From Octopus bimaculoides (taxonomy: Eukaryota), in contig NC_068998.1 of assembly GCF_001194135.2 (NCBI RefSeq), positions 12,185,950-12,249,949 of the forward strand: DNA of 64,000 bases. Direction: 5' to 3'. Every line of letters starts with the position of its first letter. Within the stretch, counting starts at the first letter, position 1. Shown one piece after another: positions 3,666-21,282 of the stretch. The notes below the pieces were generated by a model, which had not been told where the DNA came from, did not search any database, and worked only from the letters and a program-made list of their open reading frames with translations. The position numbers and the translations under genes were made by a program.

Positions 3666-3694
3666 TCAGTGTTGTTTCCTTCTGAATGAGCAAC
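3666..3694 (-). CDS. RPS27: RPS27 copy A exon 4 (G)CSFRRKQH*
   Basis: cag|GT TGC TCA TTC AGA AGG AAA CAA CAC TGA. Confidence 0.95.
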
Positions 3695-6600
3695 CTGTAG
3701 AAACAAAAGAAATTTGCTGTTACTCACAATATAAAGCATGTAAAAATGATATTGTAGAGTGGCAAGTCAGAAAACATCTAAATCTTCTTCAATATTATTT
3801 TTATTTCCTTTGTTAAGAGACCTGAGTCTTAATACAAACCCCACACTAGTAACAGCTTAACACACTGATTAAGAAAAATTGACAACAGGTCAAATGAAGC
3901 AAAGCTAAAATACTCTACTCAGCAATTACATTAAGGTAAAATTCATGTAAATTACTTGTGCCACATTCATTCACACTATTGTACAAGTCACTTAAACATC
4001 TACTCCAATCTACCTTGCAATGTGTAATGGGGTAGCTTAATGCTAGAAACAACAAATATTTAAAGAGAAATTAATTTTTTTTTTCTCTTTCTACAAGTCA
4101 TTTGAGATTTCAAATTGTTAAAAGTCTTACCTTCTGTAAGTCTGGCTTTGCCTCCTGTGGGCTGACATAATACAGTTGAACATCCAACACATAAAACAAC
4201 AGTTTGAGCATGACTAAATACTGTAGTGATTTTATAACAGCCTGAAAAATACAAAACATTGCATGAAAGACATCAACTTTTATTATAATCAGTCAACATA
4301 TTTGTATTTCAAATGTTCCACGTATAAAAATACAAAACACTGTCAACAGACAACTATATGAGGGTTGGCTGAAAAGTTTACTGGCTGACCAAGATACTCT
4401 CATTGGAAAGCAAGTAAATGAGGTTTATTTTTCAATATAGTTTCCTTGCGGTCCACACACTTCTTCCATCGGTGTTGCAATGCTTGGATTCCACTGATGA
4501 AGAAGCTTTCATCCTGGTAATCAAAAAAGTCATCAACAGCAGATATGACATCATCATCACTGCGATACCGATTCCTAGATTATAGTCAGATGGGGCCAAA
4601 TCAGGAAAATAGGGAGGCCAATCAACCAATTCAAAGCCACAGTCATGCACAGCAGCCATTGAAACCAAAGGCTTGTGTGCTGGAGCAAGACCCCATCAGT
4701 TTTCTTGGGACGTATGGTCTTGATAGACTTTTGTAACTACCTCAGCAAGTTGACATAGTACTCTCCAATGATGGTATGGCCCTTTTGAAGATAGTCAATA
4801 AACACAATGCTTTTTGCATCCAAAAGACAGAGGCCATCACCTTCCCTGCAGATGAAACAAACTTGGCCTTCTTTGGAGCAGGTGAGGAGAGCTGTTCCAT
4901 TATCCAAGACTAGTCTTGTGAGGTAGCCATGTATCTTCTCTACAAGACACCTGTACTTGTCCCTGGCATAAAGTCACCTAGCCCACACCTCTCAAATACT
5001 TCTCTCAATTAGTTGAACCAATGAATACCATTGGTTCAGAATTTTGTATTTTCAATAAAATCAGGGATAATTGTGAACCAATAGTATTTATACAAAACTG
5101 TGAACCATTGGTATTTATATAAAATTTCAAGAATGTGCGTAAAAAGTTAACTAAGTTACATTAATTCAAAACAATGTGAATAAATAAGCATTACATTTTC
5201 ACAAATGTAATTTAAATGCTAAAGGGTTAAATTAACCCTTTAGCTAATTCCAACTGAAATTGATTGCTACTTCCCACTCCACAGTGGAGTGATTAATATG
5301 ATGAGTAATCAACAACAAGCTTACACATTCACTCTATTCACAGACATCCACTGTATGGAAAAATGAATCTTACAACAGAAACATATAAGAACTAACAATT
5401 TAAAAAAGAATCACGTTTGAATTTATTGTAAGCCAAATCCCAAAAAAGAAAAATGGCTTACCTGGGCATTTGACATCCATAAAGTAACTGTCTGGAGACT
5501 GTACAAGTCGTTTTAGTTTACATTTCCTTCTTTCCTTTTCTAAGGAAGGATGCAATAAATCTTTAGCGAGCTGCAATGACAAAAACAGAAGAAATACATG
5601 AAATAAAATAGGTAGATACCAGTAATAGAAGATAGCGTGTGATAATAAGCCTAATAAGTAGTACAGAGTTCAGATACTTCCTAACTGATGAAATTAAAAA
5701 TAACTGCTATACACTATGTTGCAGTTGCAGTTGGCACTCCGTCNNNNNNNNNNNNNNNNNNNNNNNNNNNNNNNNNNNNNNNNNNNNNNNNNNNNNNNNN
5801 CTCCGTCGAGGGTTCCAGTCGATCCGCTCAACGGAACAGCCTGCTCGTGAAATTAACGTGCAAGTCGCTGAGCACTCCACAGACACGTGTACCCTTAACG
5901 TAGTTCTCGGGGATATTCAGCGTGACACAGTGTGACAAGGCTGACCCTTTGAATTACAGGTACAACAGAAACAGGAAGAAAGAGTGAGAGAAAGTTGTGA
6001 TGAAAGAGTACAGCAGGGTTCGCCACCATCCCCTGCCGGAGCCCCGTGGAGCTTTAGGTGTTTTCGCTCAATAAACACTCACAACGCCCAGTCTGGGAAT
6101 CGAAACCACGATCCTATGACTGCGAGTCCGCTGCTCTAACTACTGGGCCATTGCGCCTCCACTATACACTATAGCACAGAGCATAAAGGAAATCAAGTCA
6201 GAACAAAACTAGAGTAAATGAAACAGATACACTGGTAATGAATTACATTTAGATACTAAATTATCAATTCCAATACATAATAGGGTGTGATATATCAAAT
6301 TAGAGTAGATAGGAGGTTTCTCCTGTAATGAAAATGAACTAAGAAAGCTCAATGGCTAACCAAATTGTTAGAGATAACAGCAAAATTCCTCTCATATCAT
6401 ACTCTATATTCAAAAAGGAGGGACTTATTTGGATAATGTAGTTCTAGATATACTATGTCAGAACAAGAAGACAAAAAGGTTACAGTAACAACAACTTGTA
6501 ATGAAGACTGTGTTGTAAGGGCTTGCAAGATAACCTAACATACAGTAAGTCATAGAATAAATGTGGGAGCTGATTTTCGTAGAAAGCCTTAACTGCATGT

Positions 6601-18600: not shown

Positions 18601-21282
18601 TCACATAATTTTGTCTGTGACATTTGAAGTAATTATATGTTGACTGATATTGTAGAGAGAGTGACTTTAATTGTGTTGGTTTGTGTTTTCCAGGATGTTA
18701 TAAAATCACCACAGTATTCAGTCATGCTCAGACTGTTGTTCTGTGTGTTGGATGTTCAACTGTATTATGTCAGCCCACAGGAGGCAAAGCCAGACTTACA
18801 GAAGGTAAGAAGCATTCTCTTTTGTTCAAATAAACATATTAATAAATTCTGTGCATGAAGATACCATTTGTTGTTCTTAAGGAGCAGTAGCTCTGAACTG
18901 AGAGGCAGTTTAGAATAAATATGATGACATGTTAGCCTGGAAAGTGACATAAAATAATGGTGATGCCTAACCTTAAAGATAATATTCAGCAACCAGAAGA
19001 TTGCAAAAGATCGATATTGTTATGTTCTTACTCCTTCGTTAATAAGTAATTGAGAGAATATTTGTGGTATAAGTCTTCATTATACAAGATTCTCTTCACA
19101 TATAGGGTATATTAATTCATATGTGGTGTATTTTGTCTTTAATAATTATCATCTCTTAAATTAAGGGATATATACGCTCTTAGCTATAGTATTTACCATC
19201 TCACATCCTCTTTGCGACAAAATGTGCATATGTGTATGTATTTACACACGTATTTTGTTCTCTGTTCACAAAGCTGTCTCATCTTTCACATCATTGCTTT
19301 AACCCAAGGGTCTCCAAATTTTTTGGATCATCAACCCCTCATTGATCCCCAGGGATATCGACCACTTTGGAGACCCCTGCTTTAACCCTTTAACATTTAA
19401 ACCAGCCATATCCGGTCAAAATATTCTATCTGTTTAATGTTCAAACTAGCTAGCCCTGGCCTCTCACATCTATCTTATAGAGTTTTTTTCATTCTCAAAA
19501 TAAATAATTACATCAGCGATATCTCAAAGGTACAGGATAATGCATGATTAATTCAATACAAAGTGAATAGATAAGCATTACATTTTGGCAGAATAATCTG
19601 CATGCTAATGGTTAGTAAGCTGGCCAGATCTGGCCTAAACAGTAGAGAAAACTTCAATGTAATGTAATGTGCCCTAAAAGAACCAACTGGTCACAGCACT
19701 AACCACCAGATTTAATTGACTAGACATCAATTATCTAGTTGTGGTTGGAATCCTTTTGCTGGGGCTTAAATATTAGCTGCTTAACTATTGTAGGTAGATT
19801 GGATGGGAGTGCATCCATCCTCCTTTATGACTAATTCATTCGTTATTGATCTGTGATATCACTGTGCTTAGTTGTGAACCATGTTACAGCTATAGCAAAT
19901 GAATCTGTCAAAGATTGTACTTGGACTGCAAAGGTGCATCCCTGTAGCCACCCACAATGCTCAGGACTACTTGGGGGGGGGGGGTCTGAATGAAACTTAT
20001 TTTCCCATGTGTTCTATTATTCATTTGTTACTGGTAACTAAAGTGCCATGTAAAAAAGAAAAAGCATCCAATACACTCTGTAAAGTGGTTGGCATTAAGA
20101 AGGTCAACCAAGCCAAAACAGACTATGGAACCTGGTGCATCCCTTAGTCTTGCCAGTTTCTGTCAAGCCATCTAACTTGTGACAGCATGGAAATTGGACA
20201 TTAAATGATGGTGTCATTTTGGAATCAAACACCAATGATAAATGATCATGTATGTACTGTTGGGTAAATTTTAGGCTCAGCAATTGAAATTAGCATCCTT
20301 CATATAAGCAAGGATAGAACAGTACTAATTCAGACAAGCATGTTTGACATTGTTCCTTATTTTGTTGCGTGATGTCTTGCATAGTTATATAAGTGCTAGG
20401 TCTTTTTTACTTGTATGTGAGATAGTTAATAAAATGTCTCAGTAGTGGTGACTAACTAATATACCTGTAAAAAAGACCTAGCATTTATATAACTATGCAA
20501 GACATCACGCAACAAAATAAGGAACAATGTCAAACATGCTTGTCTGAATTAGTACTGTTCTATCCTTGCTTATGAAGGATGCTAATTTCAACTGTTGAGC
20601 TTAAAATTTACCCAACAGTACACACATGATCATTTATCACTGTTACAAGTTCATCTCAAGTATTTACAAAAATTTGGCTTCCAGTTATACTAACTACATC
20701 TTTGTACATAAAATATTTTCCTTGATTACATGTATTTACTTGAGTGCGATGATTTTGAATGTGTGATCCCCTCCTCTGTATTTTGTAGCTAAAGATCAGT
20801 AGTAAATTTTCTTTTTAACACTGCTTCTCTCCCATTTTGAACCCGATGTTTTGTATTAAATTTCCCCTCATAATGAGTAAATACAGTTAAATTCTTGCCT
20901 TTTTTGCATACTATGCAAGGTCAGCAGATCCTTTCTATAAACTAATACCCTAGGCTTTACCATATTTTCCCACCGTCTTCTTAGGTCAGACTTGTTTTAT
21001 ATTGTATATTGGAATTTTTTTGATTCTGCATTGAGCATTAGCTTGTCAATGTACATAAGTTCTTGTGGAACACAGTCCTTTATTTTTGATTGACTGAGGA
21101 GAGAGCTATGATGTATTGCCACTTGCATGCTTGACTGTTAATATATATCAAAGCTACATACAGCCTTTGGAACGATGTTTTATTTTGTTACTTTGAAGAG
21201 GACTCTACAATAACAACTGTCGTTTAATAATTCTTTTCTCACTTTTTCCCCAGGTTGTTCATTCAGAAGAAAACAACATTAA
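15619..21282 (+). CDS. RPS27: 40S ribosomal protein S27, copy B; join(15619-15624, 16247-16355, 18694-18804, 21254-21282), 84 aa
   Basis: GT-AG exons of 6+109+111+29 nt give [90 protein letters not shown] at 21314-21319. Confidence 0.97.
16247..16355 (+). CDS. RPS27: RPS27 copy B exon 2
   Basis: ttgcag|CTCGCT..CCCAG|gtaag. Confidence 0.97.
17590..17812 (+). mobile_element. tRNA-derived SINE (third family)
   Basis: AAGGCAGCGAGCTGGTAGAATCGTTAGCACGCCGG..GTTCAAATTCCGC..GGCTTTGTGTCTATAGTAGAAAGGATT. Family copies at ~30270-30475 (-) and ~54285-54485 (+). Confidence 0.85.
18694..18804 (+). CDS. RPS27: RPS27 copy B exon 3
   Basis: ttccag|GATGT..GAAG|gtaag. Confidence 0.97.
19305..19379. mobile_element. 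75-bp hAT-type MITE with 8-bp TSD
   Basis: TIRs CAAGGGTCTCCAAA / TTTGGAGACCCCTG (13/14 match). CTTTAACC is duplicated at 19297-19304 and 19380-19387. Confidence 0.8.
19382..19612. mobile_element. piggyBac-type MITE, second family
   Basis: TTAACCCTTTAACATTTAAACCAGCCATATCCGG...AATAATCTGCATGCTAATGGTTA. Copies at ~42177-42398, ~46385-46604 (inverted), ~56860-57070 and a 3' piece ending at ~5228. Confidence 0.75.
20236..20639. repeat. Long near-perfect inverted repeat (~175-bp arms, ~56-nt spacer)
   Basis: 20236-20410 is the reverse complement of 20467-20639 apart from 5 transition mismatches and one 2-nt indel. Confidence 0.95.
21254..21282 (+). CDS. RPS27: RPS27 copy B exon 4
   Basis: cccag|GT TGT TCA TTC AGA AGA AAA CAA CAT TAA. 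Confidence 0.96.

Follow-up and report, generated by a model that had tools for sequence, protein, structure and literature searches.

Most animal ribosomal protein (RP) gene families keep a single functional copy (PMC6993855). In the case of eS27 (RPS27), the family with which we are concerned here, none of the nine invertebrates surveyed by Xu et al. (eLife 2023, PMC10313321) carried more than one copy, and the duplication that yielded Rps27 (eS27) and Rps27l (eS27L) was placed in the vertebrate ancestor; the proteins encoded by the two mouse genes are interchangeable, and the retention of both has been attributed to subfunctionalized expression (PMC10313321). Here we describe a stretch of 64,000 nucleotides from Octopus bimaculoides (GCA_001194135.2, chromosome CM046618.1, approximately 12.186-12.250 Mb; hereinafter, the window) that harbors two intact, head-to-head eS27 genes, A and B, which belong to a cluster of three. 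We consider it likely that this is an old, functional eS27 cluster in which the exons are homogenized by gene conversion, the control regions are kept separate, and the copies are retained for reasons of expression or dosage.

As with the vertebrate Rps27/Rps27l pair, we are dealing with the same family kept for a long time in more than one copy, with near-identical proteins and differing regulatory regions. The vertebrate genes, however, are ohnologs that derive from whole-genome duplication and are located on different chromosomes, whereas the octopus genes comprise a local inverted and tandem cluster of three; furthermore, the octopus exons appear to be in concerted evolution, whereas gene conversion is not mentioned for Rps27/Rps27l in PMC10313321. 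Concerted evolution of RP paralogs has been described in fungi, where cDNA was proposed as the conversion donor and only the exons are converted (Mullis et al., Mol Biol Evol 2020, PMC6993855), and also in plants, for RPL9 (PMC4679983). Similarly to these fungal and plant paralogs, the octopus copies are closer to each other within a lineage than orthologs are between lineages, synonymous divergence (dS) is far below the divergence of the introns, and the promoters and flanks have diverged; unlike the situation in fungi, homology enters the intron flanks for 20-30 nt without the loss of any intron, a pattern that suggests genomic DNA donors and short tracts. Both the concerted evolution of RP genes in fungi and plants and the long-lived eS27 paralogs of vertebrates are thus already known, and what is described here is the octopod case. 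In a literature search, we found no paper describing an octopus eS27 cluster, the hits that combine RPS27 and octopus being only reference-gene papers on RPS27a (the ubiquitin fusion), and nothing relevant on RP paralogs of cephalopods.

Two intact eS27 genes and their neighborhood

Throughout, A, B and C denote the Octopus copies, and a and b the copies of Argonauta hians; where individual species are compared, Obi stands for O. bimaculoides and Osi for Octopus sinensis. A tblastn search with human eS27 as the query detects two full eS27 exon sets in the window and nothing else credible. RefSeq models exist for both genes (XP_014769511.1 for copy B; XP_014769526.1 and an additional isoform, X1, for copy A). 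The coding features, in window coordinates, are as follows.

13609-13614, minus strand: coding part of exon 1 of copy A, ATGCCG followed by GT; the sole ATGCCNGT 5' of exon 2 of this copy, with the annotated O. sinensis start codon at the orthologous position
5462-5570, minus strand: exon 2 of copy A, 109 nt, containing the D29 codon GAC (tblastn and exact model)
4131-4241, minus strand: exon 3 of copy A, 111 nt (tblastn and exact model)
3666-3694, minus strand: exon 4 of copy A, the final 29 nt of the coding sequence, stop codon TGA (tblastn and exact model)
13449-13530, minus strand: alternative first exon (coding) of copy A in RefSeq isoform X1, with the ATG at 13530 and a downstream GT donor
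13615-15618, no strand: spacer between the two ATGs, 2004 nt (exact gene models)
15619-15624, plus strand: coding part of exon 1 of copy B, ATGCCG (exact model)
16247-16355, plus strand: exon 2 of copy B, 109 nt (tblastn and exact model)
18694-18804, plus strand: exon 3 of copy B, 111 nt (tblastn and exact model)
21254-21282, plus strand: exon 4 of copy B, 29 nt, stop codon TAA (tblastn and exact model)

In both copies, the coding exons are 6, 109, 111 and 29 nt long and all introns are of the GT..AG type, introns 1, 2 and 3 measuring 8038, 1220 and 436 nt in A, and 622, 2338 and 2449 nt in B; AATAAA signals are found at 21314-21319 for copy B, and at 3532-3537 and 3506-3511 for copy A. The two coding sequences (CDS) differ at 13 of 255 nt, with 11 synonymous differences, one nonsynonymous difference (D29 in A, N29 in B) and one in the stop codon (TGA versus TAA). 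The exon structure, open frames, splice sites, polyadenylation signals and intron sizes given in an earlier note on this DNA were reproduced to the base, and its 2004-bp spacer and 13 coding differences hold as well.

The Pfam profile of the family (PF01667, Ribosomal_S27e) is matched over positions 1-55 of 55 with a score of 103.4 bits (curated cut-off, 24.5; E = 5e-30), and the exon-by-exon identity of the copies to human eS27 is 79-100%. The length of 84 amino acids and the cysteines C37, C40, C56 and C59 (CPGC ... CVGC), which we take to be the C4 zinc ribbon of the family, are found in A, B, C, a and b alike. Exon 1 and every splice site of copy A are intact in O. bimaculoides, O. sinensis and Argonauta, and in both A and B the features expected of functional genes, namely, an open frame, GT-AG introns and a polyadenylation signal, are kept across species under purifying selection. 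As the earlier note had held, A and B are intact, intron-containing eS27 (RPS27) genes, not retrocopies or haplotype artifacts. The ATG of isoform X1 sits 79 nt into intron 1 of copy A and adds an N-terminal extension of 27 amino acids. We rejected this isoform as a real protein variant, since, in O. sinensis, the N-terminal open reading frame (ORF) is either broken or not in frame, and it probably represents an unproductive transcript with an alternative donor.

The quality of the assembly bears on the possibility that the pair results from collapsed or duplicated haplotypes or from a scaffolding error across gaps. The O. bimaculoides assembly was scaffolded from short reads, and, among the five N runs of the window (35.6% GC), three lie in the eS27 region: 5744-5800 and 8581-8597, both inside intron 1 of copy A, and 13680-13689, 66 nt 5' of the ATG of copy A. 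The exons are free of N in all three cases, so the reading frame of the eS27 copies is not at issue. Moreover, the first 30 kb of the window form a single collinear chain across both genes with the gapless O. sinensis assembly (79-92% identity), with the order and orientation of the flanks of all three gaps preserved, so that the linkage of exon 1 of A to the remaining exons of A and to B is supported by an independent assembly. Given also that the introns of A and B are unrelated, that the same arrangement recurs on two Argonauta contigs, and that the dUTPase neighborhood of O. vulgaris matches, with exons 3 and 4 of A, we regard the probability of an artifact as negligible.

Two of the gaps are associated with repeats. 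The gap at 8581-8597 falls in a dispersed repeat of approximately 420 nt that, by comparison with O. sinensis, is inserted at this place in O. bimaculoides only; the repeat occupies 8421-8847 (intron 1 of A), is found again at approximately 24541-24647 and 28108-28334, and has many copies in the O. sinensis loci. The gap at 13680-13689 is embedded in AT repeats and tandem repeats of 33-36 nt, and its true length probably exceeds that shown, since this stretch comprises 71 nt in O. bimaculoides versus 277 nt in O. sinensis.

The third eS27 gene of the cluster, C, also intact, is located at 12154653-12161321 of CM046618.1, approximately 25-31 kb to the left of the window, beyond the dUTPase gene. 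It has the same exon structure as A and B, a promoter and a short 3' untranslated region (UTR) of the B type, and, in both Octopus species, the replacement H84Y, the sole fixed protein difference in the cluster. In the orientation of the record, the gene order is Sua5/YrdC (forward), C (reverse), dUTPase (forward), A (reverse), B (forward) and TM131 (reverse), and O. sinensis has the same trio of eS27 genes. In Argonauta hians, the order on two collinear contigs is Sua5 (forward), dUTPase (forward), a (reverse), b (forward) and TM132 (reverse); the interval between Sua5 and dUTPase contains no eS27 exons, so that copy C is absent there. At the O. vulgaris dUTPase locus, exons 3 and 4 of A are found on one side, the reading of copy A in this species covering the 3' exons only, and the other side has a called eS27 gene that extends beyond the locus. 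The last gene of the series serves as an anchor for orthology.

24871-28661, minus strand: TM131, gene for a small membrane protein of 131 amino acids, exon 1 beginning with MILLDNVLPIVDDFDPPKCLSERCHD; synteny anchor for the orthology of B with Argonauta b

The TM131 protein has one predicted membrane-spanning stretch, and the database gives no Pfam family for it.

Orthology and concerted evolution of the coding exons

The head-to-head arrangement of A and B is present in O. bimaculoides, O. sinensis and Argonauta hians. The 3'UTR of A can be aligned with that of Argonauta a over 219 nt (E = 1e-22; 72% identity), the sequence 3' of Argonauta b matches three exons of the TM131 gene, and B and b have a promoter in common (see below). 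On the evidence of the A 3'UTR, the B promoter and TM131 synteny, A is orthologous to a, and B to b. The introns of the Octopus and Argonauta orthologs align over 0% of their length, neutral DNA being beyond alignment between the genera. The presence of the same orientation, flanking genes, 3'UTR and promoter in both genera implies that the A/B duplication predates the Octopus-Argonauta split, which bears out the suggestion in the earlier note that the duplication is old; this split is probably on the order of 10^8 years in age. Copy C, seen in Octopus only, appears to be a later duplicate of the B type.

Beyond the octopods, the bivalve loci examined have a single eS27 copy that adjoins an Arf gene. 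Littorina saxatilis (CM074574.1) has two eS27 genes located 4.7 Mb apart that encode the same protein, each of them head-to-head with an Acetyltransf_CG gene; the alignment of the two loci covers 45% of their length, with 92% identity. This pair represents a block of two genes that was duplicated separately in gastropods. The arrangement of the octopus pair is absent from the bivalve and Littorina loci examined, and its origin independent of vertebrate RPS27/RPS27L, proposed previously, fits both these loci and the survey of nine invertebrates. Given the dating of the vertebrate duplication (PMC10313321) and the bivalve and gastropod loci without the octopus arrangement, we assume that the octopus copies were duplicated independently and are not RPS27L.

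With orthology established independently of the coding sequences, the paralogs are found to be closer within a lineage than the orthologs are between lineages. The number of CDS differences is 13-16 for A-B and 17 for a-b versus 29-37 for orthologs between the genera, and the corresponding dS values are 0.23-0.34 (A-B), 0.30 (a-b) and 0.68-0.84 (orthologs); CDS trees cluster the copies by genus, and, in the quartet of A, B, a and b, 19 sites support the genus grouping and 3 support orthology. Within Octopus, the Obi and Osi orthologs pair with each other (4-7 CDS differences) and copy A keeps its own synonymous states, at 10 sites common to Obi A and Osi A. The exception is exon 2, in which three sites run counter to orthology, Obi B being the same as Obi C at sites 46 and 67, and Osi A the same as Osi B at site 84, resulting in exon-wise mosaicism within the short CDS.

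For the Obi-Osi orthologs, dS is 0.076-0.139, and the introns of these orthologs align over 46-100% of their length, with 85-92% identity; since the former value is similar to the intron divergence, the synonymous sites appear to be close to neutral, without strong constraint. At a true divergence of 0.23-0.34, the introns of the paralogs would be expected to align, yet they do so over 0-4% only (0% for A versus B in an intron-only blastn test), so the likeness of the exons points to conversion. The statement in the earlier note that the introns are unalignable holds for the introns at large, but not for their margins, where homology persists for approximately 20 nt 5' of exon 2 and approximately 75 nt 5' of exon 3. 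A and B are identical at 19 of 20 positions upstream of exon 2, A and C at 27 of 30 upstream of exon 3, and a and b at 20 of 20 upstream and 17 of 20 downstream of exon 3, versus 7-8 of 20 upstream in the comparison with Octopus; control exon boundaries have at most 7 of 10 identical positions in the bin of 11-20 nt. Extension of homology for 20-30 nt into some of the intron flanks suggests DNA-templated conversion, and the combination of these sequence comparisons indicates that the coding exons have apparently been homogenized by episodic, short-tract interlocus gene conversion with a genomic DNA donor.

The same genus grouping in CDS trees would also be seen without any conversion, if the duplications in Octopus and Argonauta had been independent or if codon or composition pressure had made the paralogs converge. 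The GC content of third codon positions (GC3) indeed differs, being 0.27-0.30 in Octopus versus 0.39-0.46 in Argonauta, with the higher values in both a and b, and, of the 19 sites that group the copies by genus, 12 have A or T in Octopus versus G or C in Argonauta. However, independent duplications do not account for the same orientation, flanking genes, A-type 3'UTR and B-type promoter in both genera, and convergence is hard to reconcile with synonymous sites that are not strongly selected and with paralogous introns that, despite the low dS, are as unalignable as the introns compared between genera. Furthermore, the intron flanks co-vary within a genus and, being noncoding, cannot be explained by compositional change. 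We therefore give an origin without conversion very little credence.

Inverted repeats and palindromes, for example, those of sex chromosomes, undergo arm-to-arm gene conversion. Likewise, the inverted octopus copies, with a short spacer between them, seem to be homogenized by intrachromosomal conversion while the spacer is kept. Unlike in palindromes, the likeness of the octopus copies is limited to the exons and a few tens of flanking bases, and copy C, in direct orientation, also takes part.

Promoters, untranslated regions and the spacer

The noncoding features on which the comparison of control regions is based are the following.

15519-15599, plus strand: core promoter of copy B, with a GAATACGA box at 15519-15526, a TATA box at 15560-15573 and a TCT/5'TOP-like initiator, CTTCCTTTCTG, at 15589-15599; conserved in Argonauta b and Octopus C
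21283-21319, plus strand: short 3'UTR of copy B ending in AATAAA (21314-21319); the same type in Argonauta b and Octopus C
13615-13679, minus strand: 5' leader and core promoter region of copy A (ACGTACTAC...AATTTCATCTTATCC), without TATA/TCT boxes of the B type; weak homology to Argonauta a
13706-13885, no strand: CT-rich/TATA-like tandem repeat, period 33-36, approximately five copies, upstream of copy A (repeat scan)
3493-3665, minus strand: 3'UTR of copy A, conserved with Argonauta a, with AATAAA at 3532-3537 and 3506-3511

The promoters of B, b and C contain an invariant GAATACGA box, a ACTATATA TATA box and a TTCCTTT initiator, and their alignments yield z scores of 16.3, 7.7 and 8.5, with the actual score reached in none of 500 shuffles. 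In B and C, the initiator lies approximately 25 nt (25-30) past the TATA box, the leader is approximately 30 nt and the 3'UTR approximately 40 nt long. These two genes look like canonical RP genes with a TATA box and a TCT/5'TOP initiator motif, and transcription is predicted to start at the C of TTCCTTT, which for B is at about 15589-15592.

Copy A is organized differently. Its first intron is 8 kb long in O. bimaculoides and 12 kb in O. sinensis, and its 3'UTR is approximately 170 nt long, with the distal AATAAA located within a 33-nt block that differs from the Argonauta sequence by one base. The pyrimidine candidate of this copy, CATCTTATCC, is broken by purines, and the AATTTCATCTT block or the CT-rich repeat are candidate start elements. 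Comparison of the 5' regions of A and a gave a z score of 1.3 under strict scoring, which is not significant, and of 3.7-4.4 under lenient scoring. Shuffle-scored alignment detected no homology between A-type and B-type 5' regions under either strict or lenient scoring.

Bidirectional promoters are associated with head-to-head pairs whose start sites are less than 1 kb apart. The divergent orientation of A and B, conserved across O. bimaculoides, O. sinensis and Argonauta, is reminiscent of such pairs, and the earlier note had proposed a shared bidirectional regulatory region, with tissue-specific ribosome heterogeneity as a possible outcome; the single residue, D29/N29, that distinguishes the A and B proteins of O. 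bimaculoides agrees with the latter part. The octopus genes differ from bidirectional pairs, however, in the distance between them (approximately 1.9 kb or more), as well as in having two unrelated, self-contained core promoters. The distance from ATG to ATG, 2004 nt in O. bimaculoides, is approximately 14.5 kb in O. sinensis and approximately 3.1 kb in Argonauta, all above the usual limit; in O. sinensis, a 12.7-kb insertion is placed between the homologs of window positions 14514 and 14906, which approximates a natural splitting of the spacer. This insertion looks like repeat-rich noncoding DNA, with no ORF of 125 amino acids or more, the longest two (124 and 121 amino acids) being of low complexity. 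Outside the proximal promoters, no spacer element conserved between Octopus and Argonauta was detected. With the spacer so variable in length, the promoters unrelated, the B-type promoter found also at the unpaired C and no conserved spacer element, the notion of a shared region fails; a shared bidirectional promoter is not supported, and each copy appears to have a separate promoter of its own.

The postulated difference between ribosomes fares no better. In O. sinensis, A and B encode one and the same protein, which is also found under two adjacent accessions of O. vulgaris. The D29 codon of copy A (window position 5486) results from an A-to-G change, AAC to GAC, that is seen in none of the nine other copies examined and, being private to O. 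bimaculoides, could be a fixed change, a polymorphism or an error. The ratio of nonsynonymous to synonymous divergence (dN/dS) between genera is approximately 0.015-0.03, and only one of the 16 differences between the Obi and Osi orthologs is nonsynonymous. Given the identical A and B proteins of O. sinensis, ribosomes that differ in the eS27 protein (A versus B) seem unlikely, and we find the combination of a shared regulatory region with tissue-specific ribosome heterogeneity distinctly improbable.

One copy, most plausibly A, could also be a silent pseudogene whose frame is held open by conversion from the active copies. Gene conversion does seem to operate here, A has an 8-kb first intron and a promoter without the TATA/TCT elements of B and C, and the odd alternative donor of isoform X1 might be taken in the same sense. 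However, Octopus and Argonauta, between which neutral DNA is unalignable, have kept in common the A-specific 3'UTR, a sequence that neither B nor C could supply by conversion; exon 1 and the splice sites of A are intact in three species; and A shares its synonymous states with the O. sinensis ortholog at the 10 sites mentioned above. That A is a pseudogene is, in our opinion, highly improbable.

Several further observations concern the introns and the surrounding sequence. A role of the copies as hosts of small nucleolar RNAs (snoRNAs), as a reason to keep both, was rejected: at gathering thresholds, there is no Rfam hit in the window, and a permissive search of 2500-22500 yielded only a sub-threshold hairpin at 20373-20504 and a weak SCARNA7 fragment. 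The hairpin, a palindrome in intron 3 of B, is hit by several microRNA (miRNA) families on both strands, far under the gathering scores, and looks more like an inverted repeat of the miniature inverted-repeat transposable element (MITE) type than like a representative of one of the known miRNA families. No intron blocks conserved with Argonauta were found besides dispersed repeats. A scan for sigma-70 promoters and terminators, irrelevant for a eukaryote, showed no enrichment. Elsewhere in the window, an ORF of 603 amino acids (44522-46333, plus strand), with no Pfam match, is probably a large exon of an uncharacterized gene.

In Argonauta, exon 1 of a (ATGCCG followed by GT) is located inside a tandem repeat of approximately 109 nt, on the minus strand, so that start codon and donor are repeated five times in BAAFZT010000045.1 (6491-6945 of the retrieved stretch) and four times in BAAFZT010000008.1 (6635-6942). 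The region from Sua5 through dUTPase, a and b to TM132 occurs twice in this assembly, near the start of BAAFZT010000045.1 and near the end of BAAFZT010000008.1, mostly at 93-97% identity; the two a CDS are identical, the two b CDS differ by 2 nt, and either haplotypes left uncollapsed or a segmental duplication of recent date could be involved. A transposase-like ORF of 656 amino acids, with a hit to FLYWCH and a weak one to MULE, lies within the dUTPase gene of O. sinensis.

Retention of the copies and its implications

The evolutionary scenario that we favor is as follows. A tandem inverted duplication before the Octopus-Argonauta split would have given rise to A and B, and C would have arisen later as a duplicate of the B type. 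Each gene would have kept its separate control regions, compact ones with TATA and TCT/5'TOP elements in B and C, and, in A, a CT-rich 5' region, a long intron 1 and a 3'UTR of approximately 170 nt. Short-tract conversion with DNA donors would episodically homogenize the exons together with 20-30 nt of some intron flanks; with purifying selection on top of this, the proteins would stay identical or nearly so while the introns, promoters and UTRs diverge past alignment. The anatomy of the genes, their age, synteny and orthology, the signature of concerted evolution and the independence of the two promoters follow directly from the sequence comparisons; beyond these, both copies would be transcribed, and the pair would be retained via partitioning of expression or dosage, as demonstrated by experiment for mouse Rps27/Rps27l. 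Dosage or partitioned expression via distinct promoters and UTRs appears to be the most likely reason for the retention of the copies. The more specific proposition, that octopods possess an independently evolved eS27 system, older than the Octopus-Argonauta split, in which separate promoters and UTRs partition expression while DNA-templated conversion between inverted neighbors keeps the proteins identical, is put forward tentatively, as a distinct possibility.

Several considerations weigh against this scenario. The transcription of each copy is inferred from the conservation of promoter and UTR sequences and from the RefSeq models, including the A isoforms, and the homology of the 5' region of A to Argonauta is only suggestive, with a gap 66 nt from the A ATG. 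In a CDS of only 255 nt, the case for conversion since the divergence of Obi and Osi is built on three sites, and parallel compositional change, rather than conversion, could account for some of the 19 sites that group the copies by genus. Finally, the age of the duplication is a lower bound, the comparison within the cephalopods covering Octopus and Argonauta; among the best 120 hits in a homolog search with the neighboring dUTPase, the named cephalopod proteins came from Octopus and Argonauta only.

These findings have practical consequences for the study of the eS27 family. Measurements of octopus 'RPS27' by RT-qPCR or RNA-seq mix three loci unless copy-specific UTRs or single-nucleotide differences (SNPs) are used, and gene trees of the family that are based on the CDS mislead on orthology. 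More generally, the octopod eS27 cluster provides an independent test of whether RP paralogs persist because they make different ribosomes or because their expression is partitioned. Identical proteins, distinct and separately conserved regulatory regions, and conversion that opposes divergence of the proteins favor partitioned expression over different ribosomes, as far as sequences can tell. If the scenario holds, the octopod cluster would replicate naturally, in an invertebrate, what was found for mouse Rps27/Rps27l, namely, that paralogs are kept for their expression rather than for specialized ribosomes, and would be one of the rare cases in which animal RP genes have evolved in concert over the long term.

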